This document shows positions 17,800 to 63,925 of a stretch of 64,000 bases of DNA, piece after piece. The DNA is from Dicyema japonicum. Its lineage: Eukaryota; Animalia; Dicyemida. Every line of letters begins with the position of its first letter. Position 1 is the first letter of the stretch. Where the stretch lies: contig RDEW01000014.1 in assembly GCA_011109175.1 (NCBI GenBank), positions 372,001-436,000 of the forward strand, in the 5' to 3' direction. A model generated the notes under the pieces. That model searched no databases, was not told the origin of the DNA, and saw only the letters and a program-made list of their open reading frames with translations. The translations under genes were made by a program, and so were the position numbers.

Positions 17800-19680
17800 C
17801 AGTAAAGTCTTTCGAATCCGCCAATTTCGGAGATCGGCAAAATATGGCGGATTCGAGAGACTTACTGATTTTTTCATCCATTAATAATGTAAATCAAAAA
17901 ATTATTTATAAGCAAAAAATCAGTAAGTTTTTTATTTGTTTTTTTAGAGTTCGTATCATTGAAGATCCTAGCTTTTCGACATTAAAGAATTCTTCTTGAT
18001 TATAGGATTCTTTTAATTTAAGGCTAGAAAAGCCTCGCTAATAGTTACACCTTTCTGACTTTCTTCAAGGGGTTCTTCACTATTAATTTCTTGTTCTATT
18101 TTCTCCGAATCAATCAAATCAAGTTCTTCATCTTCATTGTAGTCAATTTCGATATAAAGTCTCTCTTCTGATGGATCACTTATGTTTATTTTGTCTAGAA
18201 TATATCCGTAATTTCTAATAACAGGGTTTTCATTATTTATATTTTCAATGTTTTGAATCCATTTTGCTTGTGTGAAGCATTTGAATATTAAAGAACTATC
18301 TATCTTGTTCCAATCATAATATGTGACTAATATTGCATCTTTTAAGTTTAATTTTTTGTATGCAAAATAGGGATTTATCCGATCTTCAATTTTCTGAATA
18401 ATAACAGAAAATTTAAGAGAATTGAAATTGCATTTTTACGATTTGATTATACCCTGATCCAGTGGTTGCAAAAACAACGTTGTATTCGCTGGTAGAAATA
18501 TTATTTCAATTTGGTTTAATTCAATCAAAACCTAATGTAAATGTTATGAAATTCACCTTATGTGCAGGACATTTATCTACAACAAGCAAAATTTTCTAGG
18601 ATTTTTAAACATCCCAAGTAGTAAGGGTGTTCGTTTATCTGTACCGTCCACATTTGTGCATAACATGACTGAAACTCTGTCTTTCAATAATTTTATGACC
18701 TGATTTAAGGTTATACAAACACTTTTGGACGGTATCATTTTGTAAAATAAACCAGTTTCGTCGACATTATAAACATTTTGAGCTCCGTAGAGATTGATTT
18801 TATTTTTGATTAATTCAATAAAATCTGATACCACATTAAGGTTAAAATTTAAAGTTGCAGATTGTCCATGCATATTTCGTAAATTCAAACCATTCCTCTT
18901 TTTAAATTTAGCAAGCCACCCTTGCTTCCTTGAAATCAGTGATCCCTCGTTTCGATGCAAATGTTTTGGCTTTTTCAGTAATAATTTCATCGTTCAAAAT
19001 GGCTCCTTTAACTGCATTATATTTTTTGGAAAAATTTCTAAAATTTTTATCGAAGGTAATTCAATATTCGATTTAATAAACTTTAAAGTGGAAATTTTTT
19101 GTTTGTTTTTTAATCGTGTAAAGTTACAATTCATGAAAACATCAATAAACAATGACAATGTGTTAATAAGATTTCTGAATCGACGTCTCAAAAATTAGAA
19201 GCCGCACAACTTGCTTCCTTAAAAATAATAAATAAGAAAACTGTGGATAACGTATTGAATGTTAAAGAACACCTAAGGTGGAGAGTGAAGTCATTTCTAC
19301 AGTGGGCAATAAAAACCGGCTGTCCGCTTTCACTCTCTATATCTGACTATCTAGAAAATGCGGGAAATCTATGGAGAATGAGACCGTCCCCGTTTCTACC
19401 AATTCTGTTGGATCTTCGAGGACCCCGAACGAGAGCCAGAACCCGGAAAACCGGGATCACTTAGTTAGTAGTTAACTTTTAACTTTTCTAATCCGGTGAT
19501 CTTGGGGTAAAAAAATGTGTTAATAAGTTATTTTAAAAAAATTTAAAATTAAGAGACATGGCGGATTCATTAAAAAATCTGGCGGATTCGAGAAATTTTG
19601 TTAGAAAAAATGGCGGATTAGAGAATTTATTAGTTATAATTGGCGGATTCGAGAAATGGCGAATTCGAGAGACTTTACTG
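17800..19680 (-). mobile_element. pogo/Tigger DNA transposon with TIRs and TA target duplication; degenerate transposase; contains a nested LINE fragment
   Basis: TIRs CAGTAAAGTCTTTCGAATCCGCCA (17800-17823) and 19657-19680 match at 22/24, flanked by TA. Transposase motifs GWLAKFKKR, NVDETGLFYK, KDRVSVMLC, DKCPAH, FLPANTT..LQPLDQG. Confidence 0.93.
19171..19513 (+). mobile_element. 5'-truncated LINE 3' end inserted in the pogo, 14-bp TSD AATGTGTTAATAAG
   Basis: TSD at 19157-19170 and 19514-19527; body nearly identical to about 36764-37109. Confidence 0.92.
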
Positions 19681-19724
19681 TATTTTGTTTTTAAAATGTC
19701 CTTTTTGTTTTTAAAATGTTGGCA

Positions 19725-20050
19725 CTTTAGCCCCGTGCCGCCATGTGGTGTTTCGTGGCTAATTGGTTGAAGTTTCTGTTTGTTCGTCTGTTCCTCCTCT
19801 CTCTTCCTATTAGAGTAGCGTCATGTGATCCACCTGTCCAGGTGGCGCCCAGTGCAAGGCCGGCACGAGAAAGTATCATTTGCTCTCCCCCACTCCACTG
19901 GAGGGGTTTCCACAATTGCAAGTATGGACGTCTTTTCTTTTTATGTTGATTCCGGATGGACTTTGTTTCTGTAGAAGTGGAATCTGGATACACTTAATTC
20001 GTTGTTTACTTTAACTTCTTTCTCGGTGTTTCCGGGGTTAATAAATAAAT
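19725..20050 (+). mobile_element. Short retroposon / LINE 3'UTR family B with (TAAA)n tail
   Basis: Homologous to 6085-6356; ends CTCGGTGTTTCCGGGGTTAATAAATAAATAAA. Confidence 0.85.
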
Positions 20051-20099
20051 AAATGTCCTAAAAAGGTGTCCTATTATTTCCACCCTATCAATTACTAAT

Positions 20100-20865
20100 T
20101 AAAAGTATCCAAATACACTGTTGAAGACCTTTCAATATCACACACATGTCTATCCAAATGCTTTCATTTTCACGGCAATTAAAAAGCATAGAACGAAGTG
20201 GTTCGATTTACTTCCCAATGCGATCTACTGACTTAGAAATAAAAAAAGAAATGTATGACTCAATAGACTTTCTTATTGACAAGGCAGCTCAGATATTAAC
20301 ATCAATAATCCTGAGAGCCGACAGAATGTTTATTTCTCGATTTCTTACAAAACATTTAATCAAAAACTATCTACGGGAATCTTAGCACTTATCAAAAACG
20401 GCCTTGAAGAAAACAGAATGCAATCAGATTACTCTACATCGTCCATACGCACTCTCAATTACAAAAATTCCCACAGACATAAGTGGAGCTGCTTGTTGGT
20501 CGCCATGAAGACGCACGTAGGGACGGTTCTGGTAACTGTCTATATACAGAAAGCCTACGACTCTGTTTCGAAGACACTCCTAACAAAAAAGACAGAAGAT
20601 CATGCGGCATATGCAATCAGATACCATATCCATCCCCAGTCTGCTTTCAGAAGTGGTGACATTGAGAAATGATCAGGGTTTCCTACGTATCTGCAGGGAG
20701 CTAGGAAACCAATTCAGAGAAAGGGCGGACCATGTGGAGAAATTGGATCGCTGGTGGAGCATTCGAGAAGAATTCGAGAGATGTTGGAGACTGGGATCAC
20801 CTAATTAGAGATTTAATATTTTATTTCTTGGTGGTTGTCTTGGGGTTTTAAAAATAAAAAATAAA
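20100..20865 (+). mobile_element. Internally deleted LINE remnant with 3' end
   Basis: IQKAYDSV RT motif; ends CTGGGATCACCTAA...GGGGTTTTAAAAATAAAAAATAAA. Confidence 0.7.
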
Positions 20866-20987
20866 TATCAACATAATCTAACTACATTTTCATCCTCTTC
20901 ACCTCAATTTCTTTTTAAAAAATATTATTTTTTGAAAATTTAAATCTCATTATTTAAATCAAGTAGTCTCACGTGCTTCTTTTAAAA

Positions 20988-22367
20988 ATGACGTCAGATA
21001 TCAGACAGCTCCCCATAATTGACATAACAAATGAGAATATTTCCAATTTGACTCCCTCAGTGCTCAACGCAATCAACACGAGCTCATTCTTAGCCTTGGA
21101 TCTGGTTATCCTTTTTTATTACCATAGGAACTGAGTGGCTTGGGGAAACAAGACATACTTAAGTGCAAGGACATGGATGACAGATATTCAAAATTTTCGG
21201 AGGTAGTGAAGAGCAGGTCCGTACTCTCTCTTGGGATCTCTTCATTCAAGCACGTACAGACAGTAAACGACGGCCATCAATACTTCCTCGTCCAAACATT
21301 CAATTTCAGTCTCCTTTCTCGAGATCTATACATTGTGGACCCATCTTCCCTTCAGTTTCTCACAAGTCACGGATTTGACTTTAACCAGCAATATTCCCAC
21401 GGAATCCCATATAATCACGGAAACGATAAGGATGATGAAAGTGATCCGCATGTTTCTGTGGACAACCCCTCTGAGGTTTATGTGAAGTCTTATTTAGGAG
21501 TCTGAAAGCCCAATAAGACAATTTTTGCTGGAAATTATCAAATTGAAAAAGCCGATTATTCTCCACAACGGATTTATGATCTATGTTTATTTACCACCAT
21601 TTTTACGCCAAACTCCCATCCAAATATTTGTCATTTGTGGCTGATTTGAGCGAAATGTTTTCTGGTGGTATATTCGACACGAAATTTCTAATCTGTCACG
21701 TTCTCGGTTGGCAGGTCACTTTTCTCTCGTATGGTTTTAGAAAATGGTTTTTTTGTTGTTATTTTTCAGTCAAAGACTTAATCTGGAGAACACCAAAGGC
21801 GGGAAAAGAGGACTAATAATATCGTTTCCCAACTATCCCCTGAATTTCCCTTCTATCAACAGAATTGAGTGCGCCTTCCTGCACAGAACGGAGGACTACC
21901 ATTCGTTGGCTCGAGAAATGCCCATCTGTATGCAGTTTACTGTAGTTTTTCCGTGTTAAAACAAGCTTAGAGACACGGCTGGTGTGACTCTGGCTGTAAA
22001 AAATCTCATAACTTAGATTTGGCTATCGACCATGAACTTTACGGAGTTTCTCCCCATAACGAAGTAGGGGATGAAGAGGTCGAGAGTTCTGGGCTTGTGG
22101 AGATCCTGGGTGCTCACAGAGCTGGGTTCGACGCTTTCATGACTGGCTTCATTATGGCCTTTGTGATGTCTCGATATGGAAAGAAACAGCCGGATGGATT
22201 TGTTGATTTTGGAATGACCCCAGTACTCCAATAAAGTCTTCCTCACTGCGAAAGGAATCCCCCTTGTTATTACTAAGAGTGCCTACGCTAAGACCTCACC
22301 ACAACATCGACAAAATTTGATCGTATTTTCAAACAATAAAATTTGTTCTTTTAAAAATATTGATTAA
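20988..22367 (+). CDS. TOE1: Target of EGR1 (TOE1), CAF1-family deadenylase; several mini-introns; apparent frameshift at about 21572-21586
   Basis: FLALDL|ELSGLG...RSVLSLGIS...LQFLTSHGFDFNQQYSHGIPYNHGNDK...HNG...FYAKLP...ADLSEMF..GIFDTK...CCCH finger...HRAGFDAFMTGF...NKVFL. Confidence 0.93.
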
Positions 22368-22899
22368 CTGTCAGGAATAGGAACAGGAACCGAAAACACT
22401 TTATTCAATCAGGAATTAAGAGTTAGTTAGGGGTATTAAACGAGTCCGCCTATACGGCCTGGACACTTCCTACGACCCCATCTCAATTTAGTTTAGTCCA
22501 AGCGCCGGATCCCGCTAATCCTCTTTTCTACAATGTAGATGACTGGGGCGAGAATCCTGTCCTCTTCTGCACTCAGGACATCCCGCAGCCTTTCCCCAAG
22601 GCTAACTTTATTGCTGATCTCGATTTTTCCATAAGTGACATTATTGTATCCTTTGTCGTGAGAAATACCATGCCTCACATCCGTAAAGTAACTCCGGTAG
22701 AATAATCCTCATGAAGATGAACAAGAAGGTCTCTCTGTACTGTTAGGAAGGTTCACTTGGGTCAATTATATTTTTATAACCTCACGCGTGATTTATAGCT
22801 TGTCTTTCTAATCTACATAGTTACCCACGTTTGGAGTTCGAATTCTGTGTAACTCAGTCTTAACATTTGATATGGAGTGGGTGGGGGAGGATTCGGACA

Positions 22900-23300
22900 G
22901 GTATGTCCTCTAGAATTCTTGAATGTTCTTTAAAGTAAAAACGCAGCAAATGGCAGGAAGCTCCCATATATTAGTCAACTTTGGGGTGGTGCCACATTGT
23001 AGACAAGTCTGTTTACCCGGAAGAGAGGATTCTGATTCGAATCCGTAAGACATTTATTAAAAATGTTATTTTAAATTTTTTAATTTTCCATCTCTGGAGG
23101 CTCTCATTAAAACAAAACTCCGGCATGCAAAAAAGGTTGCCCTGCAAATACAGTCAGCCGCCCAGTACGAGCTTGTGTAGGTACGAGGGAAAAGCACCGG
23201 TAAAGAATGAGGATTTTGGCGGAAACGCATCGGGATCACGTGATAGTTAGTTTTGGTTTTTACCGTGGTCTTGGTGTTAAATAAAAAAAATGAAATAAAA
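22900..23300 (+). mobile_element. LINE 3' end remnant with A-rich tail
   Basis: CGGGATCACG...CCGTGGTCTTGGTGTTAAATAAAAAAAA, the same 3' architecture as the other copies. Confidence 0.65.
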
Positions 23301-23989
23301 TAAATAAATGAATCTGGCTTATGCGTAGGGTCGAAATCGCCATTCTCAAAGGCAATTGCCTTGGATCCGTGAAGCAGACTAAAATAGAACATTCCGTGCT
23401 AACTCCCTTTCCTTTATAAATTAATTTTCCATTTAGTATTTTGCTCATAAGAAGCTTTAGTATTCGGCAGGCTTACTGAAAGTTTTTATACATTTTTTTC
23501 AAAAAAATACAAATCAAAATTTAAAAGAATTACAATTATCATAACTTTTTGACCCGGCTTATATGTGTGGTGTTAATTTCTTTATCTTACATCTAGAATT
23601 GTGATCATTCTCCTTCGGTATTCGTTACTGTATATTTTTCGTTGAAATTTGGTCGTATAAGGGGTATTTTCTATTAGCTACGTTTTGCGTCCCCGTCGTG
23701 GTGTATTAAAATTTCATCACCATCTTCAATTTCGTCGTATTTCCATCTTTTATGGTTTTTCATTTTCGTCTGATTTGACAATATTTTCCAGGGCAATTCT
23801 TCGTTTTTCTTGTTCCTCTAAATTTTTTCGAGGCGATGAAGAATGTGCTAATACTTCCTCGTTTTCATTTTAATGATCTAGTAGCGCTTCTAATTCTCCT
23901 TTTTCATATTTAAAAAAAATTCACATTGAAAAAATTTCTAAACTAAATGTTCTTCAGGAGAATCTAACAGCTAACACAGGATGAAATTA

Positions 23990-24225
23990 ATTCGAATAGA
24001 CAAAATATATTTTATGAGTCAAAGAAGTTGAGGTATTGCTAAACAAGGATGAAACCGGACTCTTTTTCCAACCTTTTTTTCTAAAACAATTTCATCAAAG
24101 ATAGAAAAGACACAAAGCATTCAAAAGTGAGGATCACTGTAGCTCTTTGTGCTAATTCAATTGGAACATTAAAAATTAAACCTTTTGTTTTTGGACATAG
24201 TGAAACACCCAGGTGTTTAAAGGTA
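23990..24225 (+). mobile_element. pogo/Tigger transposase fragment
   Basis: NKDETGLFF...VRITVALCANSIGTLKIKPFVFGHSETPRCLK. Confidence 0.8.
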
Positions 24226-24329
24226 GATTTTCCCATTACACTTTTAACAGTCTCAGCTTTAACCCACTTAACAGGTCGAAACACCTTCTTAGTCATGTCC
24301 TTTGTTATTCTTTCTTCAAATGCAGCCTT

Positions 24330-24560
24330 ACTTAGAGCAACCACCGTAGCAAGCCATTGACCAACTGTCCAGTAGTTAATGCATTTCTTTTCACCATTCA
24401 TAGCCAAACAAGAGTTCATGTTGTGCTCTTCACCACAAATTAAACATCTTTCCTTTTCCTTGCAGAAATTCGCAATGTGCCCGAATATTTGGCATCGGAA
24501 GCACCTAGTTATCGGTTTCCTGGTTTCCTTCAAAACGAACTCTCTTAACCAAAAAGTTTA
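24330..24560 (-). mobile_element. LINE ORF1 (gag-like) zinc knuckles
   Basis: RCFRCQIFGHIANFC...RCLICGEEHNMNSC...KCIN: tandem CCHC knuckles. Confidence 0.85.
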
Positions 24561-25059
24561 ATCCGTCCCAAAGCCATGTTTTAAATTCCAGATTTACAAC
24601 AAGTAAATCATAGGTCAAGGTAGACGAAACAGCTTGTCTCGACACAACATCCCCACATAGTCAATTGGTGGATATTTCAATCCCCTTCTTGGATTTAGAA
24701 TTGACTGCGGGTTTATCTTCATTAGCGAGTCTTTCTTAGTTGTTACTGCTTTCCCAACATTTACTTTTGTTGAAATTGTGGCACACAACGCAATTGGATG
24801 TCTATTCATTATTAGGAACACAAGGAAGTGTAGAGTGTGTATTCCCAAAATTGGTGTATCTCACTGTCCTTAATCTTCAATAACGGAGCTCAAAACACCC
24901 TTTCTTCAATAAATGAATTCTTAAAGCATCCACCTCAGAATGATAATGGACTAAATCGATGGCCCTTCAATTTGGGTTATCTTTGATATTCCAGCTCTTA
25001 AGTTCAGACAATCACTTAAATTTATTGAACCAGAAAACCATCTTCATTACCAGAATAAA

Positions 25060-25618
25060 AAAAATAGGGTGATCCCGGCCTTTCTCGAAAATCGGATACA
25101 CCGAGAGAGAAGTTAAAGTAAACAACTAATTAAGTGTATCCAGTTTCCACTTCCACAGAAACAGAGTCCATCCGGAATCAACATAAAAGGAAAAAGACGT
25201 CCATACTTGCAATTGTGGAAACCTCTCCAGTGGAGTGGGGGAGAGCAAATGATCCTTTTTTGTGTCGGCCTGGCACTGAGCGTCACCTAGACAGGTGGAT
25301 CGCCACTCTAATAGGAAGAGAGAGGAGGAACAAACAAACGAGCAGAAAACTTCAACCAATTAGCCACGAAGCACCACATGACGCCACACGGCAAAAAAAT
25401 AATGCGTTGAAAAATATTAATCAAAAAGAGCAGGTGACGAGGTTACCCTTATGGCACCCCGTTCGGATAAAACAAAAAAAATAAAATTAAAAAAAAAACA
25501 ATTTAAAACATTAATAAATTTAAAATTTGTAGTCTGTTGTTGAATGACTGGAACTGAAAGAAAATCATTAATGTGCACAATATATTTGGCATAATTTATA
25601 GAAATATTACCTCCAGAC
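25060..25618 (-). repeat. Inverted duplicate of 5862-6356: family B retroposon plus YJU2 upstream region, exon 1, intron 1 and the start of exon 2
   Basis: On the + strand 25544 reads ATGACTGGAACTGAAAGAAAA..AAT|GTGCAC..TTATAG|AAATATTAC, a copy of the YJU2 5' end. Confidence 0.9.
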
Positions 25619-25761
25619 ACAAATAGCACGCTTATAATTCACCTACTTCAAAATGCCAAAATCCCAAATTTCTCCAAATAAGGCATTAATAAATTAGGAA
25701 ATTTCCAAACTTACAAATAATCACGAATATAAACCTTAAATGAATATCTAAAGAATATTCA

Positions 25762-28890: not shown

Positions 28891-28894
28891 TCGA

Positions 28895-29450: not shown

Positions 29451-29599
29451 TCAAAACGTCCATAAGAAGGATGATTAGTTGGTCAACTCGTGGAAACTCA
29501 AGGACACAAATGTCTGATTTTTTTATTTAACCAAAAAACACCAATAGTTAATCTCGTTGAAATTAATTAGGTGATCTCGACAATCCCTGAAGAGCTTTC

Positions 29600-30420
29600 T
29601 CAACTTCTCCCGATGTTGGACTTTTGACCCAACACATTCACGGTATGGGCGGCGGACAGTGTTTCTTGAGAAAGCTAACTGGGGTGATGTGCTTCTGGAA
29701 ACTTGATACAGGACGGACTGTCGACGAGAGGTCCTGCTGGAGGGTTAATGTCAAGAAGCTCTTGCCGTTTTGCTCAATAAGGTGGTCAAAGGGACTGGGT
29801 GAAATGTTGTTCAGCTTTGCGATGTGCATTATGGTAGTCGCCGCTCGACATAGGGTGTTATCAACTTTAAGACGGTTGGTCCACGAAAGATTAATTCGCC
29901 ATGCTGCACAGGCGTAACTGATTGTTGGCTCGATGAATTGCTTATAGAGAATACCGAGAGCAGGGAATGGCTTTTTTATTCCACCAAATTTGGTTTTGAT
30001 TAAACCAATTTTTCTCTGACAAGTTCCAATGGTCTTTCAATATGGCAGAAAAACACATGTGCGTATCAAAAGTGACCCCCAGAATTATAGGGTTCTTCGT
30101 AAAAGGGATTTTTTCGTCGTCCAGAAGTAGATCCACGGTACATCTTCCGAGCCTTTTCTCCGAGGTAAATAGAGTGGTGGAGGATTTTTCGGGAGATATG
30201 TTCATCCGGTTTCGGTGTAGCCAAGTTTGAATTTGAAGCAAGAGTTCTTGTACTTTTTTTGAAGCATTCATGAGCTCTTTATCACGTAAAATAATGAGTA
30301 GGTCATCAGCATAGGTGAAAATTTTCGAGTCTTCCGGAAAGGCAGGAGACAAGGGGAGCATTGGGGAACTCCATTTAAAAGTAATCTTGAGACTGATCGA
30401 ATCCCATCCAATCATACACG
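29600..30420 (-). mobile_element. APE-type LINE ORF2 (RT C-terminal half)
   Basis: TYADDLLI...WLHRNRMNISPEKS...IPFTKNPIILGVTFD...ISYACAAW. Confidence 0.9.
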
Positions 30421-31799: not shown

Positions 31800-31970
31800 A
31801 ACAATTAGCCAAAAATCCTCTGTCAACGAGTTTACATAAATTCGAGGAGACATTTCTTGATCGCTGGCAGACCATTTAAGGAGAGTGCGGGAATTATTAG
31901 AAGCGAAGATCACTTCATTAGTTGTCTTTGACACCTTCTTTCTCGGTGATCATGGGGTTTCTTAAAAATG
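31800..31970 (+). mobile_element. LINE 3' end remnant
   Basis: GATCACT...TTTCTCGGTGATCATGGGGTTTCTTAAAAA. Confidence 0.6.
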
Positions 31971-35099: not shown

Positions 35100-38000
35100 A
35101 TGATCTGACTTATAAAGCAGATCTCTTCGTTCATTCACGAAGGTAGAAAATTATATATTCCAATGGGAAGACAACCGACAAACAAGTGATTCAATTTAAC
35201 AACCAAACATTTAGTCAAAGAAAGAAACTATTTTAAAAAAAGAACATCCCGTTGAAGGAGGATATAATAAGAATTCGTACACTAAACAAGGAGATTAACA
35301 AATATATCAGTAAAACGAACGAGAAACGCTGGACAGAACTATCAAAAGCCCTAACAGAAAATCCGTCAGTACAGAAGATCTGGAACAAAGTCAAGTCTAT
35401 CAAAAGGTCTTTTGATGAACCGCAAAATGGGATATCATTACAACCAAACACCTTAATGAAATACTATGCTTCCATAGCACATAAAAACCAAGAACACCAA
35501 GTACTCCTAAACAGAATAAAACCGAAAGGATCATACATGTGGACCATATTTACGGCGAAGGACGTCCAGTGGGCATTATCAAAGGCCCGAAACTCCAAAG
35601 CCCTAGGTCCAGACAATATTTCTACAACGGAACTAAAGCATCTAGGACCTCTTGCTCTAGATTTAATTGCTTACATATTCACAATATCAATCAATATGAA
35701 CATTATTCCGGATGTCTGGAAGTCTCGATGATGAAACTGAAACACCTTGGTGAAAAAGCAACCGAATTCCTATCGTACGTTTATACTCTATCTGTGAGCA
35801 ATAATATGATACCTTCTATATGGAAGAAATCCATAATTCTGCCAATTCGGAAGCCAAACAACCTGCAAACGATCCCTCTTCTTATCATACAATTGCAATT
35901 TTATTACGATGTCCCGAATTTTAGAAAAATTAATCTTAACACGAATCAAAGATATTGTACCAAATCGAGTATTCCAGCATGGATTCCGTGAAAATCATCT
36001 ACTACGACTCACTTAACAAAATTAACTCAATATATATTTAATGGATTCTCCTATCCAAAACCACATAAAAGGACCATAATGGCTTCAATAGACTTGAAGA
36101 AAGCATTCGACTCCGTGTCCCGGTCGCTGCTTATAGAAAATTTCTAAGTCTTATAAATCCAAACATTAAAAGATGGCTGTCGAATTTTTTAAATGGAAGA
36201 AGAGGACAAGTGATGTCAGACAACAGAAAATCTAAATTTTGTTTATTGCCGAATGGTGTCCCTCAAGGTTCACCTCTCTCTCCCCTGCTCTCAACCTGTA
36301 CACCAATGACCTTCCCACCAACGACGATCCCGATACATTAATACTCTCATACGCAGATGACATTGTTCTTTCAACGAGAGACTCTAACTATGAGAAGGCA
36401 GGGATGGAACTTCAAAGTTATTTTGGTATACTGGAACATTGGCTCATATCAAATCGACTGGAAGTTTCTACAGGAAAGTCGTTTATAACAATTTTCTCTA
36501 CATATAGAAGATCATTATACTCTCCCAAAACCAAATTGTTTGGATATGAAATTCTATGAATAAGTCTCCAACAATACTAGGAATAAAGTTGGATACTCTC
36601 CTGACATTCGGCCAACACGTCAATGACGTTATTACCAAGGTCAGGGGAGGACCAATATATTGAAAATTTTGTCCCGATCACCAATCGGGCGCAACACCTT
36701 CTTACTACAGAAAATTTACAGACAATACAGTAATCGAATACGCATGTCCTTCCTGGAGCTCGATGATTTCTGAATCGTCGTCTCAAAAATTAGAAGCCGC
36801 ACAACTTGCTGCCTTGAAAATAATAAATAAGAAAACTGTGGATAACGTATTGAATGTTAAAGAATATCTAAGGTGGAGAGTGAAGTCATTTCTACTATAA
36901 GCAATGAAAACCGGCTGTCCGCTTTCACTCCCTATATCTGACTGTTTAGAAAATGCAGGGAATCTATGGAGAATGAGACCGTCCCCGTTTCTACCAAATC
37001 TGTTGGATCTTCGAGGAACCCGAACGAGAGCAGAACCCGGAAAACCGGGATCATTTAGTCAGTAGTTAACTTTTAACTTTTTCTAATCCGGTGATCTTGG
37101 GGTAAAAAAATGTCTGGAAGAGATCATACATCAAACTGATCTTGAAGCCAAGAAAATCCGAAAATGACTTCTCTTTCTACAGACCAATCTCGATCCTATG
37201 TTTACTTTCCCGAATACTCGAAAGATTAGTTCTTGAAAATATCAAAGACTACATCCCGCTCTCTCCTTTCCAACATGGATTCCGGGCAGAACACTCCACA
37301 GCAACATACCTAACGTTCCTGTGGTAGTTCATTGCGGAGGGATTCAATTGCACTAAACCACACCAACGAACAGTCTTGGTCCTTTGATATAACAAAGGCT
37401 TTCGACACAGTCTCTAGAAAACTCCTTAGTGAGAAAATTTACGATACATGCATCCATCAAAACATAAAACTATGGATTACCAACTTCTTAAGTGGGAGAC
37501 GTGGACAAGTGATTTGCAATAACATAAAGTCAAAACCCCGTCTCATACCAAATGGAGTCGCTCAATGATCCCCACTATCGCTTTCCTTTTTCAATCTTTA
37601 CATAAACGACATGCCACAAACCTGTAATGAAAACTGACTAATATTCTTCGATGCCGACAATATTATTCTTGCCTCCAAGGACAGAAGCATTCAATCAGCG
37701 ACTCAGCACGCTCAACAAATTTTTGAAAAGTTGGAACTATGGTTCTCGAAGCGGATACATGACCCATCACCAACAAAGTCCTCTTTCACGATGTTTACTA
37801 CCTACAAAAGAAAGCTCTGTGTCAAACCAAAATTCTTTATGAAGAACGAGGCTATTCCTATTAGCAAAACACCGGAGATTATGGGATTCACCTTTGATCA
37901 GGGACTCACCTTTATCCGACATGATGAGAACATAGTAGCTTCAGCTCTGAGAAAAATGAAAATTTTAAAGGTACTCTCAAAAACACTTAGAGACCAAATT

Positions 38001-45280: not shown

Positions 45281-46829
45281 GGGACCTCCTAAATTACAGG
45301 AACAGTTCTCATTTTGCCTTGCCCAAGTGAAGGCTTTGTAATGGAAATTCCCCCATCTCTACGAAAGGGTTATTAAAAAATTCAATTATATGATATGTAT
45401 CTTTCTAAGTTTTCTTGGAACTAAGCTGTTCCCTCCTTCGGTCAAAAGAGACACAAGTTCAGATTAACTAGAGTATATCTCTTCAATCAACTTTTACTCT
45501 AGATTTTTTCTGTCTTGAGGTACCCCAGTTACATTTATGGTTTTGTGACAATTACGACTAGACGCTTGAAGGTTCGTTAGTGAGGTTGAGCTAATTTCAT
45601 ACTTTTCATGAAATGAAATGTGGAAAACAGTATGGTGCCATGTGGCTACTTGATTGAAGATTTCTCTTCTTCTCTACTTGCTTCATCGAATCTACCTTAC
45701 TCCCAATGTCTCGGCATCTTCATTCCACCAGGAGACAATTTTGCTCCCTGGCTTCGTCTCAGCTTCCAGGATACTGTTTTTTAGTGCTCTTTATTCTTGA
45801 ATTATTAGAAAGTACAGAAACAATGTAATGGTTAATAAATAATTAAATGTAGTCACTACCCACGGGAGTTGACGGAGACTCGCACAAATTTGTTCTCTGA
45901 TGTAATGATCTTCTGTGTTTAGGTAATGGTAAGTTTTTGTTCGTTAGGTGGATGCCCGGCCGTATGTTCACAGATCATATTCTCTAGGATACTAAGGTTT
46001 CTTCAATATGGCCCGAATTATCTACTTGTATAAGTTAGAAATACATGCTCGTAATATATCATTAGAGTGTAGTTCAGAAATTATCAAATTACCGAAATTC
46101 TTCTCAACACATATACTGTGAGACTCGTAGGTATTTTTAGATAATTTTTGGACTGACTAAAACATAATAACGACATATTCGGGATGTCAATGGTTGCTAT
46201 AGCAATAAAGACATATTTCGGGAGCCAAGTCGTTTCTTTTTATAATATTTCGACTCGCTGGGCAAGAAGATTAGGCGGTGGTTTTTACCATTTTCCTAGT
46301 GACTTCTTAAATTACAGGAACAGTTCTCATTTTTATTTACCCCCAGTCCTTTCAAGTAGAAGAAACTGATGGCTTACAAAAAAGTCCCAGATCTGCTATA
46401 AGACAGTATTTTATCAGTTCTTTCATCTTCATATATTACTCTGATGATAACTTTCTTTTCAGATTGAATATAAATGTATTTTGTCTATGACAGTTTTTTA
46501 CTAAGTTAAATGAACTCCCCGTTACCCATAAACATATGAATATATAGGATTCCACGTGTACAGTGCTCTTCACTATCCGTTATACCAGTTTTCTCCATGT
46601 AACTTTCATCTTCCCACATATACGCAATAATCGAGGAAATCATTTGTTTACTGTTCGAAGAGAGTCCTCTGACGTGAAAGTTGCAATTATAAACGCGGTA
46701 GAATAAACAGACTGAGAGTACGGGCATGTCTAGAGGGGGCCATAAGGGCAGCCACCCCGGGCAGCACGCTGTAAGGGGCAACATATCTAAGCTATAGAGT
46801 TCACGTTATTAATCTATACTCATATATGT

Positions 46830-48910: not shown

Positions 48911-50656
<1,746 letters not shown>

Positions 50657-50769: not shown

Positions 50770-51000
50770 ACGTCCAGTACGATCATGCATGGTCACGAGG
50801 GAGGAACGTCGGCAAAGATGAGGTCCCTGATCGGAATCTCCACTGGAGGAGTTCTCAAAATGGCGGTTATGAATGTGCATGATGGTTGGAAAGGATGTGT
50901 CTCACTTTGACGCTGGGAACTGGATATACCTTAATTTGAAATTAATTAGCTCTTAACCTTTCCCCGGTATATCGGGGATTATTAAATAAAATAGTAACGA
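50770..51000 (+). mobile_element. LINE 3' end remnant related to family B
   Basis: CTCCACTGGAGGG shared with family B; ends CTGGATATACC...TCCCCGGTATATCGGGGATTATTAAATAAAA. Confidence 0.7.
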
Positions 51001-51995
51001 TCTTCAACTTAAAAGACCTGATTGATTGTTTAAGCAGATGGATGGAAACACGGAAACGAAGCTTTCCTACCGTGGGAGGTTCGTGTCCACTTGGCGCACC
51101 TCCATTGTGGTCACCACATGGATTTATGTTCCAACAAAGTCACCTGTCATATCTCTGAGAGCGTCTACTTTTGACTCTGAAGTTCCTGTTAGCCACCATT
51201 TTTTCTTTACTCTAAGGGACCTGGTTAGTGATGAAGATAAATGTATCTACAACGCAAAAATATCAAAAGTCAACTTAGATTTTATCTTGAATGAAAAACA
51301 TGTAAACAATGTTATCTTCTGGAGCTGAACTGTCACTGCAGTATAGTTAGATGAACTTTGTTGAAGAAAATTATTTTATTTTTAGCTACACAAACACTTA
51401 ACAACTACTATAAGTTCCTTTCAGTCAAGACTGGCCTCTCACGGATTGAAAACCTATTTCACATGACGATTTGTAAGGAAATGTGATCAATAAGCCAACT
51501 CATTTCTCTAATATCTTTCTTCCTCTTTGCGATCTAATACGGTTCATCAGGGTCAGTGATCTGCTTCCAAGATAAACAAACATATTCTTCAATATGCTTG
51601 GCCCCAGCACTGCATAGTTGCAGGACTGTGGAGAAAAGATCCTAGAAAAACACGAAATTAATGGTAAGGGAACGCGTCACCAGGGAAAAGGATTTTTTCT
51701 GGTGGATTGGGGAGGAAGTTTCTTTTTTGAGGTTCATTAGGTGGCCCTTGAGTGCCACCAGACATACATATCTGGTAAACAAAATGAATCTAAATAAAAT
51801 AGCATAAAAATGAATTAAAAAAAATAAATTAAATTGATTCTAAGATCAAGGGTAAAACCAAACTAACTAATTACTTGATCCTGAAAATTAAAAATGAAAT
51901 ACTGATCTGAATATTTTAATTAAATATATTTTTATAAATTAAATTTAAATATATTTAAATAAATTAATTAATATTGCACGTTGTTCTTTTGACTT

Positions 51996-52511
51996 ATGTC
52001 TGTTCCGTAAGCTTTTTAGTTTTAACAAATAGGACCCAGTCTTGTTCGTTCACTGCTTTTAAAATTTACCCAGGCCATGGAAGAACTCACATTCGACCTG
52101 ACGGAAAGATTCTACACTTTATAACGGCAAAAAGTCATGCAGCATTCAAACAGGAGAGTAAACCCCACAAAATACCATGGACAATATTCTACAGGAAGAA
52201 ACACAATAAAACCAAAACTAAAAACGAGAATAGGAATAAATCGAGGAAGACTCAGAAGTTCGTGCGTCCCATTCTGGGAATGGGTCTTGCGGATATTTTA
52301 GCAAAGACTCAGAGGCGGACTCAAATAAGGGAAGCCGCCAATGCTAAGGCTGCCGCGTACTAATTGTCATGTTTACCATAGAATTGCAAACGAACGAAAA
52401 AAGGCACGTGAAGCTCTGCGAGCAAAGAATCCGTCAGCAAGACAGACCACTAAACCAGTTGCTACTTCTAAGGCTCCTGTTAGAGCTCCTGTTAAGAGGA
52501 AAGTACGTTGA
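51996..52511 (+). CDS. RPL24: 60S ribosomal protein L24 (eL24), 154 aa; introns 52007-52032 and 52357-52381
   Basis: MSVP|TQSCSFTAFKIYPGHGRTHIRPDGK...IPWTIFYRKKHNK...FVRPILG..LADILAK. Confidence 0.95.
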
Positions 52512-53539
52512 TCTTTTGCTTAATTTCTGATTTTTTCCTTATTTTGTGTTTTTTGAATTTAACCATAAATTGCAATTTTTACTTACATGATCAACATTGA
52601 ATCTATCCCCGCCGACATAATTGGCGAGTTGCTGCCTTGGACAATAGCTATCAACTGAAGGAATCACTCGCGGATATCATGACTTCTGAATGTCGCCAAA
52701 CGACTCAGGTTCTCGGGAAAAAATTTCCTACATAGCCCTTCAGTAATCTCGGCAGTAATTGCATGGAACGTGAACTGGATGTTGGTTTTTCTTCCCCTTC
52801 TCTGGAGACCTTGTCATAACAAATAACTTATTTTTTTAAAATAAATTTGGAATTAAAGATTATTTTACAAAATGGTCAAATACTTGGTTTATTAAAAATT
52901 TCCATTAATAAAATCCCCAACACTATAATATGAGAACTATCCCCATACCAAAAGTTTATTTTCACCTGATTCTGGGTGTCCGTTTGTCTCTTAGACAAAT
53001 TCCATGAAGATCAAAGCTAGCCAAAAAGGGTTCTAAAATTGCGGAACGATGGACCTCTGGAAAGTCCCCAGAACCAAGGTTGTGACTACAAGGAGTCATT
53101 TATACAGCCGATACGTAATTTCCTGGGTTTCGAGGGAGGAACATCGTGCCAAGTTGAAGTTTATGTTAGAGTGTGCCGGGATCATGTGAGTATTAAGTTT
53201 GGTGGTTCCGTGGTCTTTGGAATTTTTCATTTCATACGAGCAATTCCAGATCATTAAGTTCATTCAATTTTGGACTGGACGAGATTCAAACCCGGACTCT
53301 TTATGTATTTGAATCTTACTTTATTCACAACTTTTGGTTTCTAAACTCTCTTGAGTCTGTCACCTCGTAATGCTTACGAGAGAGGGAAAATAAGAGCTTT
53401 CAACTTAAGTAGACATTCTGTGCAATAGAGATGCGTCACTACCTCAACCTTCAACCACTTGGCTGACTGATCAATTCGTATTTGCACTAATTGGCCAAGG
53501 AAGAGCAGAATTGAGGCACGGTTATAGAAATCTCACATA

Positions 53540-55930: not shown

Positions 55931-55934
55931 TCGG

Positions 55935-56015
55935 TGGAAATTAAATAAAGTGCGTGTCCTGCCTATGCGGAGCTATAAAAATTATGGCTCTCGTGAAAAG
56001 GCTGTTATTATTACT
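55935..56015 (+). mobile_element. SINE-like family A, 3' portion
   Basis: AAATAAAGTGCGTGTCCTGCCTATGCGGAGCTATAAAAATTATGGCTCTCGTGAAAAGGCTGTTATTATTA. Confidence 0.85.
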
Positions 56016-57730: not shown

Positions 57731-57779
57731 AAGACTGATAAGACTGTAAAATAACCTCTTTTGTTTTTCCTGGTTTCTC

Positions 57780-58480: not shown

Positions 58481-58544
58481 CGACATACGGACCTGGGCAA
58501 AGGAAACTAGGAAGACTTCCAGTTTGTCCCCGCCATGGGTTGAG

Positions 58545-58700
58545 TAAAGATTGTCCCAATAGTCCATTACAGGCTTCCGCTTCCGAAAAGAGTTGGAGAA
58601 GTAGATCCGCCATCTTCAATTTTCATCACACGTCCTACCGTCGCGGACATAACTTCATTCTTAAGCGGAAGAGTTTTCATAATGGTAATCTCCGCCGAAC
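58545..58700. repeat. Interspersed repeat family C
   Basis: Matches 15300-15420, 9395-9510 and the reverse complement of 29320-29450. Confidence 0.7.
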
Positions 58701-59007
58701 AGGGAGAAGGGAAGAAGATACTTTTCAACAACTGTCTTGTCTGACTCATCGCCTCACAGGTGGGATCTGTTTGACGAGAATTGACCTTCACTAGAAAGCT
58801 TCATCTTTAGGATTCGAACCCACGACTGTAAGATCCAATGTCATCCAACGTTACGTTCAACAAGAAGACCCAAAATTTCCAGAAATAATTAAATTCGAAT
58901 CTTAGAGTGTTTTATAGTTTTTTATTAATAATATAAAATTATTTATTATTTTAAAATTGTTTAAAAAATAAAATATTCAGAAATTTAATCAATAAATTAA
59001 TAGACCT

Positions 59008-60064
59008 ATGGACTATGAGAATGCCGTTCAAAAATTTGCCAAACTTGTTGTTTTTCCTCCGATAAAAAAATGTTACCGAATGCTTGAAATTCTACTGGTA
59101 ATGGTAGACGATCTCAAAGGACTCCAAAACTTTTTTCAAGCAATAATAAGTTGCGACAGTAACCACCAATGTGTTGTTATTAGACCGTATTTCTACTTTT
59201 ATAATTATAGTGATGGGAAAAATTATCACTTATTATCATGCCAATTATTCCGCTGGTCTGACATAACCCACGTGGGTCAACTGAGATGTATTGACCACTG
59301 TAAATACGGCTGCGACATTACCAATGAAGTAATTTGTATTAACCCCTTCCATTATGTCCGAAATAACGGTATTATTCACGTATTGATTTATTGACTTTAT
59401 TGGCAATTAATTACACAATTTAGGCGCTGTCCCCATTCAGTCTCCTTCAGAAAACCTAGTCTGGGCAATTTATTCGATTTACAATAAGGATACCGTCTTG
59501 ATAAAGGACAAATGCATATATGAGTGGTCCCATCATATATGTGATTCCGACGTTCCTTTTGTTCCTGATCTCGCCCAACTAATCGGTACACGATATTTTA
59601 ATTTTGAGGAAAGGGAGTGAGGATATCATACGTGAAACCATTTGTCCACATACACTGTGACTCTGATACGACAATATATTTCTATAGTGTCTTCTTCAAT
59701 CAGTTGAACAGAGCCGATCCTTCCCAAATTGCTGAGCTTAAAGCAAGTAGTTTTCATTTTAAAGTCAGATTCTTCCGTAACGGTATTCAACGAGACCACC
59801 TTCGCTGAGAATCTAAGTAAATTAACGAAGGATGCGGATCATACTTCCCTCTACAACATGTCAAACTCGTATACGATATATCTTTCCTTCGGTAATTCAT
59901 GGGGGACACAACACAAGTTGGAGTAATTAATATATAGTTACAAAAATCTCAACAAACTTGACCTCTGGATTACCATAAATCTCATTATACCTTCTGAATG
60001 GCTTGATAATGTGCTAAGAGCCCTCGGAGTTCCTAAAAACTACTCTTGCACCAGTCAATCGTGA
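59008..60064 (+). CDS. SMAD: Receptor-regulated Smad (Smad2/3-like), about 303 aa; introns 59187-59210, 59369-59423, 59586-59608, 59747-59768, 59917-59937
   Basis: MH1 LFRWSD...C..C...VICINPFHY; MH2 IG|KGVRI...CDSD..IY..S..FN...VFN...FA...SF..SWG...WLDNVL..LG; C-terminal TSQS*. Confidence 0.92.
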
Positions 60065-60197
60065 ATTTTTTTTACATTTTAAACTTTCGGTGATTATTTT
60101 TCATTTTTTGTTTTTGAAAATAGTCGTTTTTTTCTTTTAATGTTCCTGTACAAGAATTAATGAAATTACAGTTGTTTTTTACGTTTAGCATTCATTT

Positions 60198-60280
60198 AGT
60201 TGACGAGTGACGCCTTCATCACTGTGGAACTGGATTGTCCCCAGGACTCACACACAAGAAAAAAGAAAAAAACAATAAAT
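60198..60280 (+). mobile_element. SINE-like family A, 5' portion
   Basis: TTGACGAGTGACGCC...GGAACTGGATTGTCCCCAGGACTCACACACAAGAAAAAAG. Confidence 0.75.
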
Positions 60281-60329
60281 TATAACACTCTTGAAGTCTT
60301 GGATTAATTAACATAACTATTCTTGTCTT

Positions 60330-62590
60330 AATTATTATTACTAAAAGCACTCCCGAAAAAACATAAATTAGTTAAGTTTCCCTTGTGCCGTATTCCTAAT
60401 CAATGATTATTAATCATCCTCTCCGTCAACCTCGACCATGATCCTCTGTTGCGCGCTAGTTCTCTTAGGTAGTCCAGATCGTCCGCTGAAGTTAGTCTCA
60501 TACCAACCGCCGATAGGTCTTCGTTCAAGATACTCGGAAGTGTTGTTCTTGGCCAGAGTTGTTAGATTTAAATCATTTGATTTTAATCAACAAAAAAAAT
60601 CAATGATTTAAATCATTAGAAAAAATCAAAAAAATCATTTAAATTTTTTAATGTCTGGAAGTCGATAAACGTATTATTTCTGGAAAGACCGGGAGTCGAG
60701 CCAGATGCCGTAATTGCGGGAAGGAGGTACAAGGTCTCGTATCTCGGATGAGGCAGCATCATTTATCATGTCGAACTAATATTGATATCCCTGAAAATCC
60801 GTCGAAACCTGAAAGTGATTTGATCAGCGAATTCCTCCCAAGGATGAGGGACCAGTCTTTAATCAATTTCGTTACTACGACGACGTCATCGAAGAAAAAT
60901 TTGATTGATATGCAACTCGCTAGATACATATATTCCACTAACACTCCTTTTGCTGCTGTAGAACATCCGGAAATTGTCAAATTCGTACAAATGCTTCTTC
61001 CTGGGTATCATTTACCCTCTCATAATCAAATTGGTGGTCCATTGCTCGATCGTGTGTACGACCAAATACATGAAGACTGTCGGCAAAGACTCCAGGACAA
61101 GACAGTGTCTATGATGTTGGACGGGTGGAGTAACATTCATAATGAACCTGTTATTTGTGCGTCAGTTGTAACATCGGATGGAGAAAGCTATCTAATTGAC
61201 ACTGTGGACACGTCTGGATATAGCCACACCGCGGAGTATCTTCAATCTGTTGCTTTAGTCTTTGTAAATTCCGCCGAGCAACGGTTTGGATGTAAAATCG
61301 GGAGTCTTGTAACGGACAACGCTGCCAACATGACTAAAATGAGGAGGATAATGATGCAAGATGACGATGAAATTATTACATATGATTGCTAGGCACATTA
61401 TCTCAACCTTCTCTCAAAGGATGTCGAAGTAGCTGACGTCAAAGAAACCTTCGTAAGAATAAATAAATACTTTCGAAACGTCCATCTTCCAGCGGCATAT
61501 TTGCGGCTGATTAAACCAATTGCTGTCGCTTTAGACAAAATTCAAAATGATTCTACGACGATTAGTCATGCTGTAGAAATTTAAAAAGAACTTGAACAGA
61601 CTTATATTGACCATGAATGTACGACTATTTTAGAAAAAGTGAAAACTCGGGCTGATCAAGTATTAACACCTTTCCAGTACTTGCGAATCTAATGGACCCA
61701 ACACGTTGTGGGAGATCTCTTTCAACTGCTGAGATTGCCTCGCCTTGGAGTATTGTGCTGAACATTATGAATATGCTCTTCCGACTCTGATTAATTTCAT
61801 AGCAAAAGTTGATCCATTCAAACTATACATGTTCGCTCCGAATTTATTGAGCAAAGTATCACCTATAGCTTGGTGGGAGTCAAACTCATACCAGCTACCT
61901 TCTGAAGTAATTCACTCTGCAAAAAATTCTTGGAGCAGTTCTTCCACAGGTGGAATAGAACGAATTTTTTTGACTTTTGGATTCTTACATTCAAATGTAC
62001 GAAATAGGCTGGGAATTGAAAAAGCTGCCAAACTTGTTTTTTGTTTACAAGCTTTTAAATAAATAAATTCGATTTCCATTGTTTTTGTTTTTATTTTACT
62101 TTGTTTCCGAATAAAAATTATTTAATTCAAAAAATCCTGTTAAATCAAAAAATCAGATTTTTTCGATTTTTTTCATAAAAATCATGGTTTTTAACAACCC
62201 TGTTCTTGGCCTTCCGCGAAATCCGGCTCCTGTATGTGCGAAGTAGTTGACCATTGCGAAATTTGCGGGGATCTGGTCATTTAGATGTCTTGATTAAAAA
62301 TATCACCGGACAGGACGCCGTATTTGCATTTATTATAATGGTTTGCAGCAGAGATCTTCATTGGTAAGTTAATATTGTTTACCGATTTGAGCTGAGCTCC
62401 GTGGAAAGAGTCAAGACGGTCCATTTCCCGATTAGAGATTCCCCAAATCCCAGAGTTGTAGGTTAGTACCGGGATGACAAAAGCTTTGTATATTCTAAAC
62501 CTGGTGTTTAGTCCTATTCTCTTTCTGTGACTAGTCGCATACCAGTTGGTGTTTCTTGTGAGGTTGTTTAAGTCCTCTGCAATTGAAAGT
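60330..62590 (-). mobile_element. RTE-clade LINE 3' part split by the hAT insertion
   Basis: RFRIYKAFVIPVLTYNSGIW...LDSFHG...GFRGRPR|TTLPSILNEDL...LARNRGSW: the reading is continuous after removing 60554-62210. Confidence 0.88.
60554..62202 (+). mobile_element. hAT DNA transposon (DUF659-type), internally deleted; TIRs and 8-bp TSD TTCTTGGC
   Basis: TSD at 60546-60553 and 62203-62210; ends CAGAGTTGTTA / TAACAACCCTG; subterminal GATTT(T)AAATCA repeats; MMLDGWSN, VTDNAANM, ERIF.TFG..HS..RNRL..EKA.KLVF. Confidence 0.95.
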
Positions 62591-62739
62591 TCCCAGAGTG
62601 AACGGAGAAGTCGGTAAAAAAATACAAATCTTGTCTTAATAATAAAATAATAATAATTTTTTTCTTAAATAATAATTCTTTTCTTAATAATCTCCCTATT
62701 ATTATAAGCACTTTCCGAATCTTCCACGTTCTATATTTT

Positions 62740-63925
62740 CAACATGGTTTCCTCCGCGGTAGGTCCACCGCTACATACTTGGCAACCCTATCGCAGTTCA
62801 TTGCCGACGGTTTTAACACCCATCCGCCTCACAATCGCACAATCTTGGTTTCTATTGACTTCAACAAAGCCTTTGACACTGTTTCGAGGAAAATCGTTGT
62901 TGGAAAAATATTTTCTACTAATATTCGTCCGAATATGAAATTATGGCTGGCCAACTTTTTGTCTGGAAGACGTGGAAGAGTAATCAGTGGTGATCTCAGA
63001 TCTTGATCACGATTACTACCGAACGGGGTACCCCAGGGGTCTCCACTTTCACCAATTCTATTCAACCTATTCCTACACGACCTACCTAATGATGGAGACG
63101 AAGATTCCCTTCTATTATCCTACGCAGACGATAGTCATTGTAATACGGAACCGCTCGACGCAAGTCGCATCCCTTAAAACTCAGACAAAATTGAGCACTC
63201 TCCACGATTGGATTGTGGCAATCGACTTAACGATTTCTGCAACCAAGTCTATCTGTTCCATTCACGTCGGACCGTCGTTCCAAGGATGAACCGAGTATCT
63301 TTATTGGTCCCACTCGGATTCCAGTGACAAAGTCCCCCACTGTCCTTGGAGTCAAGTACGACAGTCTTCTCAATTCAACTCCCACGCAAAGACATGATCA
63401 CCAGGGGCCTCCAGAAAGTTAACGTTTACGCGCCCTTGTTCGGAGGACCACGAGGAACATGGACTTTTCCGTTTCTACACTCTACCAACAAACAATCGCG
63501 CCTGCCATTGAGTATGCCTCCGTTGCATGGAGATTCGGCTATCGGAGTCTATGGTCCAAAGAGTCAACTCAATATACCAGAAAACAATCATTATGCTTTG
63601 CCCACGTAATGGATCAACAGTCGACCCACTACTCATGGAAGCTAAGATCCGTAGTCGTGGCTCCGAATTTTTTCGCGTCTGTGAGGAAGATGGAAACCCG
63701 CTTGGCCTAATCCTTCCATGGCAAGAGAAAACCGATTGAATAAGAAATTCCCCTCCCCGATCGGATTCCTCTGCAAGACCGAGAGAAGGCTCTTCCAAAG
63801 TAGTGGGGACAATGGAAGATCACAGACGTCGAATGGCACAATGATTGCGAGGACTGGGATCACCTAACTGTTTGACTCTTTGTCTTTTTTCTCGGTGTTC
63901 CCGGGGTTATTAAAATAAATAAATA
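62740..63925 (+). mobile_element. 5'-truncated APE-type LINE with (TAAA)n tail
   Basis: TILVSIDFNKAFDTV...NGVPQGSPLSPILFN...SYADD...P.VLGVKYD; ends CTCGGTGTTCCCGGGGTTATTAAAATAAATAAATAA. Confidence 0.92.

Follow-up and report, generated by a model that had tools for sequence, protein, structure and literature searches.

The window, meaning the whole 64-kb stretch of DNA that was analysed, carries remnants of non-LTR retrotransposons (LINEs), all copies of which are decayed: no open reading frame of 215 aa or more and no active master element is seen in it. The elements encode reverse transcriptase, fragments of which (RVT_1) lie at 36239-36559 and 62779-63006, upstream of the 3' ends at 37047 and 63856, and a further reverse transcriptase piece (29942-30415, minus strand) belongs to the LINE that ends at 29578(-). 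The end at 19453 is preceded by an open C-terminal piece of 102 codons that terminates in Gly-Ile-Thr-stop, several other copies are no more than short fragments, and the window holds no tRNA-like heads. An exhaustive protein search with the 29942-30415(-) piece returned 680 relatives (E up to 0.001) at 40% identity or less, and two distant 3' ends came from the contigs of these relatives, L003 complete and L004 cut off. The nearest full-length relatives combine APE and RT domains, with or without RNase H and in one case with PRE_C2HC, and a C-terminal ...FL...G[VL]T-stop recurs in several of them; the Jockey/I-group label given to the elements of the window is plausible. Word-index protein searches found no matches to the same RT piece or to the C-terminal piece at 19156-19461, and no near-identical relatives of a hAT-like ORF.

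The 3' ends of these elements carry a conserved 3'-terminal module, about 65-80 nt long, with one hairpin as its core (Table 1). The 5' arm (a), 9 nt long, is made up of the last three ORF2 codons (Gly-Ile/Tyr-Thr), the stop codon opens the loop, and the 3' arm (a') follows 22-38 nt downstream. The loop starts with a conserved UAAUUAGUUG-like sequence and ends in a pyrimidine tract. Directly after the hairpin comes a G-run, in most copies GGGGU, and then an A-rich (UAAA)n-type tail. Eight a/a' sites had been listed in the original prediction, and on recomputation all of them proved exact in position and paired as written. Covariance models added the five further full copies marked as additional in Table 1, and with three more in a related public contig (L006) the sample comprises 16 copies of roughly 10 lineages, 13 of them in the window; a single genome or two close relatives probably account for all of them. 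The genome of the window is probably that of a dicyemid, and intron sizes rule out octopus as its source, and probably as that of L006 too. Copies are referred to here by the start of arm a (50923 being the copy whose arm spans 50922-50930).

Table 1. Modules and related 3' ends in the window; arms are given in the direction of the strand.
Feature	Position	Strand	Details
Full module	19443..19519	+	a 19453-19461 (GGG ATC ACT, TAG stop); a' 19495-19503; GGGGT 19504-19508; A-rich tail
Full module, family of 19453	37037..37114	+	a 37047-37055; a' 37090-37098; GGGGT 37099-37103
Full module, Gly-Tyr-Thr-stop variant	19976..20052	+	a 19986-19994; a' 20025-20033; single U-U mismatch in stem; GGGGT 20034-20038; (TAAA)n tail
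Gly-Tyr-Thr family hairpin, internal	25094..25151	-	a 25141-25133; a' 25102-25094; 9 perfect pairs
Full module	23222..23313	+	a 23232-23240 (GGG ATC ACG, TGA stop); a' 23264-23272; stem 5 bp further outward (GCAUC/GGUGU); GGTGT 23273-23277; long A-rich tail
Full module, shorter stem	31896..31969	+	a 31906-31914; a' 31945-31953; GGGGT 31954-31958
Full module, A/U-rich stem	50912..50990	+	a 50922-50930; a' 50966-50973; GGGGA 50974-50978
Full module	63846..63925	+	a 63856-63864 (GGG ATC ACC, TAA stop); a' 63894-63902; GGGGT 63903-63907; (TAAA)n tail
Additional full module	20783..20866	+	a 20793-20801; a' 20830-20841 (3-nt bulge); GGGGT 20842-20846
Additional full module	10300..10370	+	a 10310-10316; a' 10343-10349; GGGGC 10350-10354; tail
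Additional full module	29518..29588	-	a 29578-29570; a' 29542-29534; then U GGUU and A-rich tail
Additional module	51826..51892	-	a 51882-51874 (AGGAUCAAG); a' 51850-51842 (CUUGAUCUU); 9 pairs, A-U in place of the C-G of other copies; AGAA instead of G-run
Additional module	53168..53234	+	a 53178-53186 (GGG ATC ATG, TGA stop); a' 53209-53217; reduced G-run UGGA
Arm a and loop start only, interrupted	6346..6364	+	composite family of 25141(-)
Arm a and loop start only, truncated	7250..7272	-	arm a GAG ATC ACT TAA
Variant end	6516..6575	+	G-I-T-stop; long U-rich loop; weak 3' arm; UGGUUC AAUAAAU tail; twin copy at 25018-25076(-)
Type-B end	2069..2130	-	different short hairpin, 4-nt loop; then GGGGU and UAAAUAAAU; z -3.6
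Second type-B end	46328..46390	-	GGGGGU and AAAUAAAA after hairpin

The a/a' sites are far above chance. A strict sequence pattern matches the window twice, where 0.02 matches are expected, the covariance model R1 finds 11 copies in the 64 kb (E 3e-14 to 5e-8), and models R1 and R2 recover 11 to 14 copies (E 1e-15 to 2e-3). No Rfam family reaches its gathering threshold in the window, a pattern scan of metagenome contigs gave two matches, both due to chance and inside unrelated GC-rich sequence, the ENA long-read assembly locus L005 holds no convincing copy, and L007 and L008 (second 'Octopus sinensis' contig) add no type-A copy. The 3' UTRs had been described as otherwise dissimilar, a description contradicted by their alignment over full length with a mean column identity of about 60-66% and a conserved loop start; the ends are homologous. 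Pairing was counted on two alignments, one guided by the model (A6) and one of 21 ungapped columns (A8), because MAFFT mis-registers the copies at 50923 and 53178. The hairpin lies within about 100 nt of the 3' end, and a short repeat or simple tail, (TAAA)n-like or A-rich, comes after the structured part. The G-run and tail that had also been claimed for 25141(-) are both absent from that copy, which is internal and continues into a second 3' module.

The claim that the two arms of a/a' change together is borne out, and it is plain that several related LINE families end in a conserved, co-varying RNA stem. The paired fraction of cells is 92.9% in one half of the helix and 98.1% in the other, and five of the nine pairs are altered on both sides. 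With four outer pairs included, the paired fraction is 82.6% and the covariation score 0.398, as against 36-49% and at most 0.199 when the partners are slid, a control that keeps relatedness; none of 500 shuffles reaches the observed score, a comparison that ignores relatedness and overstates significance. Arm a consists of the closing ORF2 codons, the frames ending in G-I-T-stop or G-Y-T-stop, with the stop codon directly after the arm in every copy that has a readable frame, and synonymous codon changes within it are matched by the non-coding arm. The third base of the Gly codon changes from G to A in company with C to U (GC:10, AU:3), and the third base of the Thr codon is U or C opposite G, or G opposite C in the copies at 23232, 51882 and 53178. 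The replacement of Ile by Tyr (AUC to UAC) is likewise accompanied by a change from GAU to GUA. Two other, unrelated hairpin types are followed by the same G-run and UAAA tail, and the arms of the two type-B ends have co-varied (GG..CC and CAG..CUG). It could be supposed that none of this reflects an RNA function, arm a being kept as a protein C-terminus and the 3' arm by descent or by some action at the DNA level, and arm a is indeed coding and the copies are related. This explanation is nevertheless extremely unlikely, in that codon changes in the coding arm, silent or not, are followed by the non-coding arm at five of nine positions, pairing collapses in the slid controls, and hairpins of other types that occupy this position also keep their pairing through changes in both arms.

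The predicted ensemble is dominated by the a/a' hairpin in 13 of 14 copies (P 0.53-0.99). A stem extension by two outer pairs is possible: when four pairs are added outward, only the first two (Y opposite G, in 10/14 and 12/14 copies) are frequent, and the extension shows no covariation.

A second helix, c/c', had been proposed between the pyrimidines 5' of a' (c) and the G-run (c'), which together with a/a' would form an H-type or kissing-like pseudoknot or a two-state switch and so regulate the access of reverse transcriptase or the stability of the 3' end. Complementarity is visible as written, 11 of 15 copies having an unbroken run of three or more pairs when a linker of up to 2 nt is allowed, but it shows no excess over base composition, by which it is explained. 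The c/c' cells are paired at 63.6%, compared with 59.7% in shuffles, 128 of 500 of which are as high; at 0.236 the covariation score falls just below the 0.242 of shuffles, and sliding the register by +1 leaves 61.4% paired and raises the score to 0.332. What is being paired is a near-invariant GGGG facing a pyrimidine-rich loop, and GGGG pairs with any pyrimidine run; in 12 of 15 copies, 43-100% of the other 6-mers taken from that loop's 3' half pair with it just as well. Where the G-run has changed (AGAA, GUGC, GAAU, UGGA) there is no in-register response in c. TAC/GTG and ATCC/GGGT, which had been offered as examples, each require a shifted register, and in the GGUG copy the 5' flank of the stem pairs the same U in register (CAUC/GGUG). 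The degenerate G-runs found with tract-less loops (23232, 51882, 53178 and positions 10843 and 25428 of L006) can be read as a joint loss of both partners, but this amounts to a single phylogenetic event.

Energetics are adverse as well. In 13 of 14 copies the fold left when arm a is blocked, which lacks a/a', is less stable by 4.0-12.4 kcal/mol, and pairing of the G-run into the loop has a probability of at most 0.12. The exception is 50923 (0.99), whose strong c/c' hairpin (UCCCC/GGGGA, -8.6 to -11.1 kcal/mol) is the only one predicted to win. The two exclusive folds of comparable stability that make a two-state switch are thus not found. As regards a pseudoknot, the segment order a-c-a'-c' matches the H-type, but the second helix of the module has no covariation support and its loop lengths are sterically too short. 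By general pseudoknot geometry, a linker of 0-2 nt cannot cross a helix of 9-11 bp, and because the linker between a' and c' is only 0-2 nt, the coexistence of c/c' with the 9-bp a/a' helix (11 bp with the possible extension) is sterically excluded, although there would be room for a partial pseudoknot in which a/a' is reduced to its inner 4 bp. Taken as a whole, a pseudoknot or switch is very unlikely, and the c/c' helix is unnecessary to the explanation and probably does not form.

The module is probably the 3' tail, of the stringent type, of related decayed non-LTR retrotransposons, composed of hairpin, G-run and (TAAA)n tail. In stringent LINEs retrotransposition requires such a stem-loop, to which the cognate ORF2 protein binds (PMC4176376), and by analogy with such elements (PMC4176376, PMC4316615) the earlier suggestion of a cis-element for recognition by reverse transcriptase is still the most reasonable one. 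The element's own ORF2 protein would recognise the hairpin, and target-primed reverse transcription would start in the repeat tail. A stem that changes by compensation beneath a conserved loop start fits recognition of stem plus loop. At the junction of hairpin and tail the G-run is conserved; its two leading G residues may lengthen the stem by base-pairing to the pair of pyrimidines immediately 5' of arm a, or the run may instead be read as single-stranded sequence.

Parallels with better-studied elements are instructive. The L2-clade elements UnaL2 (eel) and ZfL2-1/ZfL2-2 (zebrafish) likewise have a stem-loop near the 3' end followed by short tandem repeats. Unlike them, the module has a 3' UTR of only about 60-70 nt, because its 5' arm is the last ORF2 codons, and it has a long loop (22-38 nt) and a G-run between the stem and the (TAAA)n-like tail; the host differs, and the clade probably differs. 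In CR1 of amniotes a 3' UTR hairpin and an octamer microsatellite similarly occupy the extreme 3' end; many subfamilies have kept them, and they have been proposed as the RT recognition site (PMC4316615, citing Suh et al. 2011), but sequence, repeat unit and clade differ from those of the module, and that text reports no overlap with the ORF end. R2 and SART1 of insects require their 3' UTR RNA for target-primed reverse transcription by their own protein (as cited in PMC4176376). These are site-specific elements with multi-helix 3' UTRs of a few hundred nt, in contrast to the single hairpin and dispersed insertions seen here.

The position of the stop codon invites a different emphasis, namely that the hairpin matters mainly by enclosing it, favouring cis binding or tuning termination or read-through. 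A terminating ribosome would open arm a, the stem would re-form beside the just-finished protein, and for as long as arm a is engaged, a' could be held temporarily by the pyrimidine tract together with the G-run. The juxtaposition of stop codon and arm a is consistent with this, as is the emergence of c/c'-like pairings in several copies when arm a is blocked. In L003, a distant relative from a marine metagenome whose ORF2 ends in ...GVT-stop, the predicted stem begins at the stop codon, but that fold is no better than shuffles (z -0.9). The overlap of arm a with the ORF may reflect merely a very short 3' UTR, and the argument, purely inferential, is compatible with the recognition module described above; as the main role of the hairpin, enclosure of the stop codon is unlikely. 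Highly improbable, too, is a fully translation-gated device in which the ribosome melts the stem, c/c' holds the freed 3' arm, and the stem re-forms beside the reverse transcriptase and enforces cis-preference; if this were true, c/c' would be a real but transient intermediate.

The module does not represent a new kind of RNA element, its apparent novelty having rested on the unsupported pseudoknot or switch. The covariance model R2 provides a marker for the 3' ends of this LINE group and its non-autonomous partners in dicyemid assemblies, and as a by-product the module search flagged dicyemid-like contigs within an octopus assembly. As a recognition hairpin, which it would be by analogy, the module is a clean natural example among LINEs and one that is partly written in coding sequence. 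Since substitutions at the end of ORF2, whether or not they change the amino acid, have counterparts in the non-coding arm, the RNA structure can be seen to constrain the C-terminus of the protein.

It is clear that helix a/a' is real and that the 3' ends of these LINE copies carry a hairpin. Reading the eight sites and recomputing the arm coordinates returned positions and pairing exactly as in the original prediction, and the order of arm a, U-rich spacer, arm a', G-run and A-rich tail stood at seven of them; at the eighth, 25141(-) (copies are named by the start of arm a), the stem is perfect and both G-run and tail are absent. A profile search (nhmmer) and searches with two covariance models added full copies at 20793(+), 10310(+), 29578(-), 51882(-) and 53178(+); the copies at 6346(+) and 7272(-) are truncated, and the covariance model R1 of the 3' module scored 11 copies in the 64 kb window with E values of 3e-14 to 5e-8. 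No Rfam family matches the module. In all, the sample comprises 16 copies that represent about 10 lineages. The 3' UTRs had been called otherwise dissimilar; instead, the module ends can be aligned over their whole length at a mean column identity of 60-66% and share a conserved UAAUUAGUUG-type start to the loop, and they are therefore homologous modules.

Arm a forms the end of reading frames that are open for up to 102 codons, and reads in frame GGG ATC ACN plus stop (Gly-Ile-Thr-stop) or GGA TAC ACT TAA (Gly-Tyr-Thr-stop). Because one arm is coding, changes in a/a' are informative: at the synonymous third position of the Gly codon G or A faces C or U, respectively, in the opposite arm; at the third position of the Thr codon U, C or G faces G, G or C, respectively; and the replacement of Ile by Tyr (AUC to UAC) is matched by GAU to GUA. 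Inspection by hand adds an A-U pair in 51882(-) and a G-C pair in the 23232 group, each replacing the C-G of other copies. In a model-based alignment of 14 sequences (A6), 92.9% and 98.1% of cells are paired in the two halves of the helix and both sides have changed in five of nine pairs, bearing out the predicted co-change of the arms. With four outer pairs included, 82.6% of cells are paired versus 36-49% when partners are slid by 1-3 columns, and the covariation score of 0.398, versus at most 0.199 for slid partners, is reached by none of 500 shuffles. Conserved loop starts UAAUUAG or UAGUUAG (for example at 19462-19472, 19995-20005 and 20802-20810) place stops in two frames directly after the ORF2 stop, and may serve as back-up stops or as a motif recognised by a protein.

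The proposal that a second helix, c/c', between pyrimidines 5' of a' and the G-run, forms a pseudoknot or a two-state switch with a/a' is not supported, as c/c' fails three independent checks, of counting, specificity and physics. Its pairs had been said to hold, but in an ungapped alignment of 21 columns and 12 copies (A8) 63.6% of cells are paired versus 59.7% in shuffles, 128 of 500 of which reach the observed value; covariation scores 0.236 versus 0.242 in shuffles, and sliding the partner by one column leaves 61.4% paired with a higher score. The G-run hardly varies between copies, either pyrimidine can pair with G, and a pyrimidine tract makes up the 3' half of the loop; of the other 6-mers in this half, 43-100% pair with the G-run no less well than c in 12 of 15 copies. 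Where the G-run is altered (AGAA, GUGC, GAAU, UGGA), c shows no in-register change, and the TAC/GTG pairing cited for the GGTG copy requires a one-base shift, whereas the 5' flank pairs that U without any shift. A linker of 0-2 nt between a' and c' is too short to cross a 9-bp helix, so that a/a' and c/c' cannot coexist, and the two are unequal as alternatives, since in 13 of 14 copies the fold predicted with arm a blocked is 4.0-12.4 kcal/mol less stable; in those 13 the predicted probability of the G-run pairing into the loop is at most 0.12. The exception is 50923, in which the stem is A/U-rich and a CCCC tract is present; it alone is predicted to prefer c/c'. In favour of c/c' one may count that G-runs are degenerate in the subgroup that has no pyrimidine tract in its loops, but this joint absence is a single phylogenetic event.

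In predicted folds the first two G of the G-run instead lengthen the stem by pairing with the dinucleotide just 5' of arm a. Almost every copy has pyrimidines there, although the codon involved differs (Thr, Ser, Ala, Ile, Val, Phe), and the two outer pairs form in 10/14 and 12/14 sequences of A6; this extension has no covariation support. GGGGU with a UAAA tail also follows two other hairpin types, type B and a third type in the related locus L007 (see table). The arms of type B co-vary between its two copies, and both predicted folds pair the G-run with CC of the 5' flank. That a common junction follows differing hairpins speaks for the G-run as an independent junction signal; judged from sequence, the junction motif is one that outlives changes of hairpin.

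Features in the window and in related public loci
Feature	Sequence	Position	Strand	Description
Composite element, two stacked 3' modules	window	25018-25151	-	
Composite element, two stacked 3' modules	window	6270-6580	+	
Type B ends	window	2130-2069 and 46390-46328	-	short hairpin, 4-5 nt loop, then GGGGU and UAAAUAAA tail
RPL24-like gene, fast-evolving	window	51996-52363	+	26-nt GT..AG intron 52007-52032, after fourth codon
Third hairpin type	L007	11890-11947	+	then GGUGU AAAUAAAAU; end of another LINE (RT gene model P0019)
Distant RT relative	L003	2120-2262	+	marine metagenome, Tara Oceans contig; ORF2 end ...FLRDVGVT-stop
Three module copies	L006 (GCA_006345805.1, contig VCDQ01001777.1)	1998(+), 10843(+), 25428(-)		filed under Octopus sinensis

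When the 25141(-) locus is aligned with 6270-6600(+), a second 3' module (G-I-T-stop, U-rich loop, UGGUUC AAUAAAU) continues from both, and the 25141(-) hairpin is therefore internal to a composite element, in which a tailless Gly-Tyr-Thr hairpin precedes a G-I-T-stop module with its own tail. The 6346 copy has about 115 nt inserted within the first loop. Such an arrangement suggests that tails were replaced or stacked.

Upstream of 37047 and 63856 there are RT fragments (Pfam RVT_1), and 680 relatives were found for the RT piece that precedes 29578(-). Word-index protein searches with the LINE pieces gave no matches; exhaustive search found relatives at no more than 40% identity, the full-length ones having APE and RT with or without RNase H, and several ending in ...FL...G[VL]T-stop. 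At 24081-24533(-), close to the LINE fragments, is a gag/ORF1-like ORF that has CCHC zinc-knuckle motifs. In the metagenomic relative L003 the predicted stem begins at the stop codon and is followed by a G-run and a (CAA)n tail; this fold is no better than shuffles. In the contig filed under octopus, L006, an importin-alpha gene has introns of 28 nt (18144-18171) and 23 nt (18809-18831). Ultra-short introns are a dicyemid hallmark, with a mean intron of 38 bp, 49% repeats and 36.7% GC in Dicyema japonicum (PMC6736024), and L006 is therefore probably dicyemid DNA within an octopus assembly, its module copies probably providing no independent cross-phylum evidence. In the window itself, the 26-nt intron of the RPL24-like gene, a GC content of about 37% and dense repeats point to dicyemid DNA and away from an octopus.

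The best-supported reading, by analogy, is that the module is the 3' tail of a stringent-type LINE, so that the predicted role as a cis-element for RT recognition and target-primed reverse transcription is kept and its pseudoknot or switch form is not. The ORF2 protein of the element itself would recognise the hairpin, and target-primed reverse transcription would start in the repeat tail. Such recognition of a 3' hairpin, with priming at a repeat tail, has been demonstrated in elements of the L2 clade (PMC4176376) and suggested for CR1 (PMC4316615), which likewise combine hairpin and repeat tail. The special feature of the module in the window is that its stem overlaps the end of the ORF, an overlap that, speculatively, may couple termination to RNA binding.
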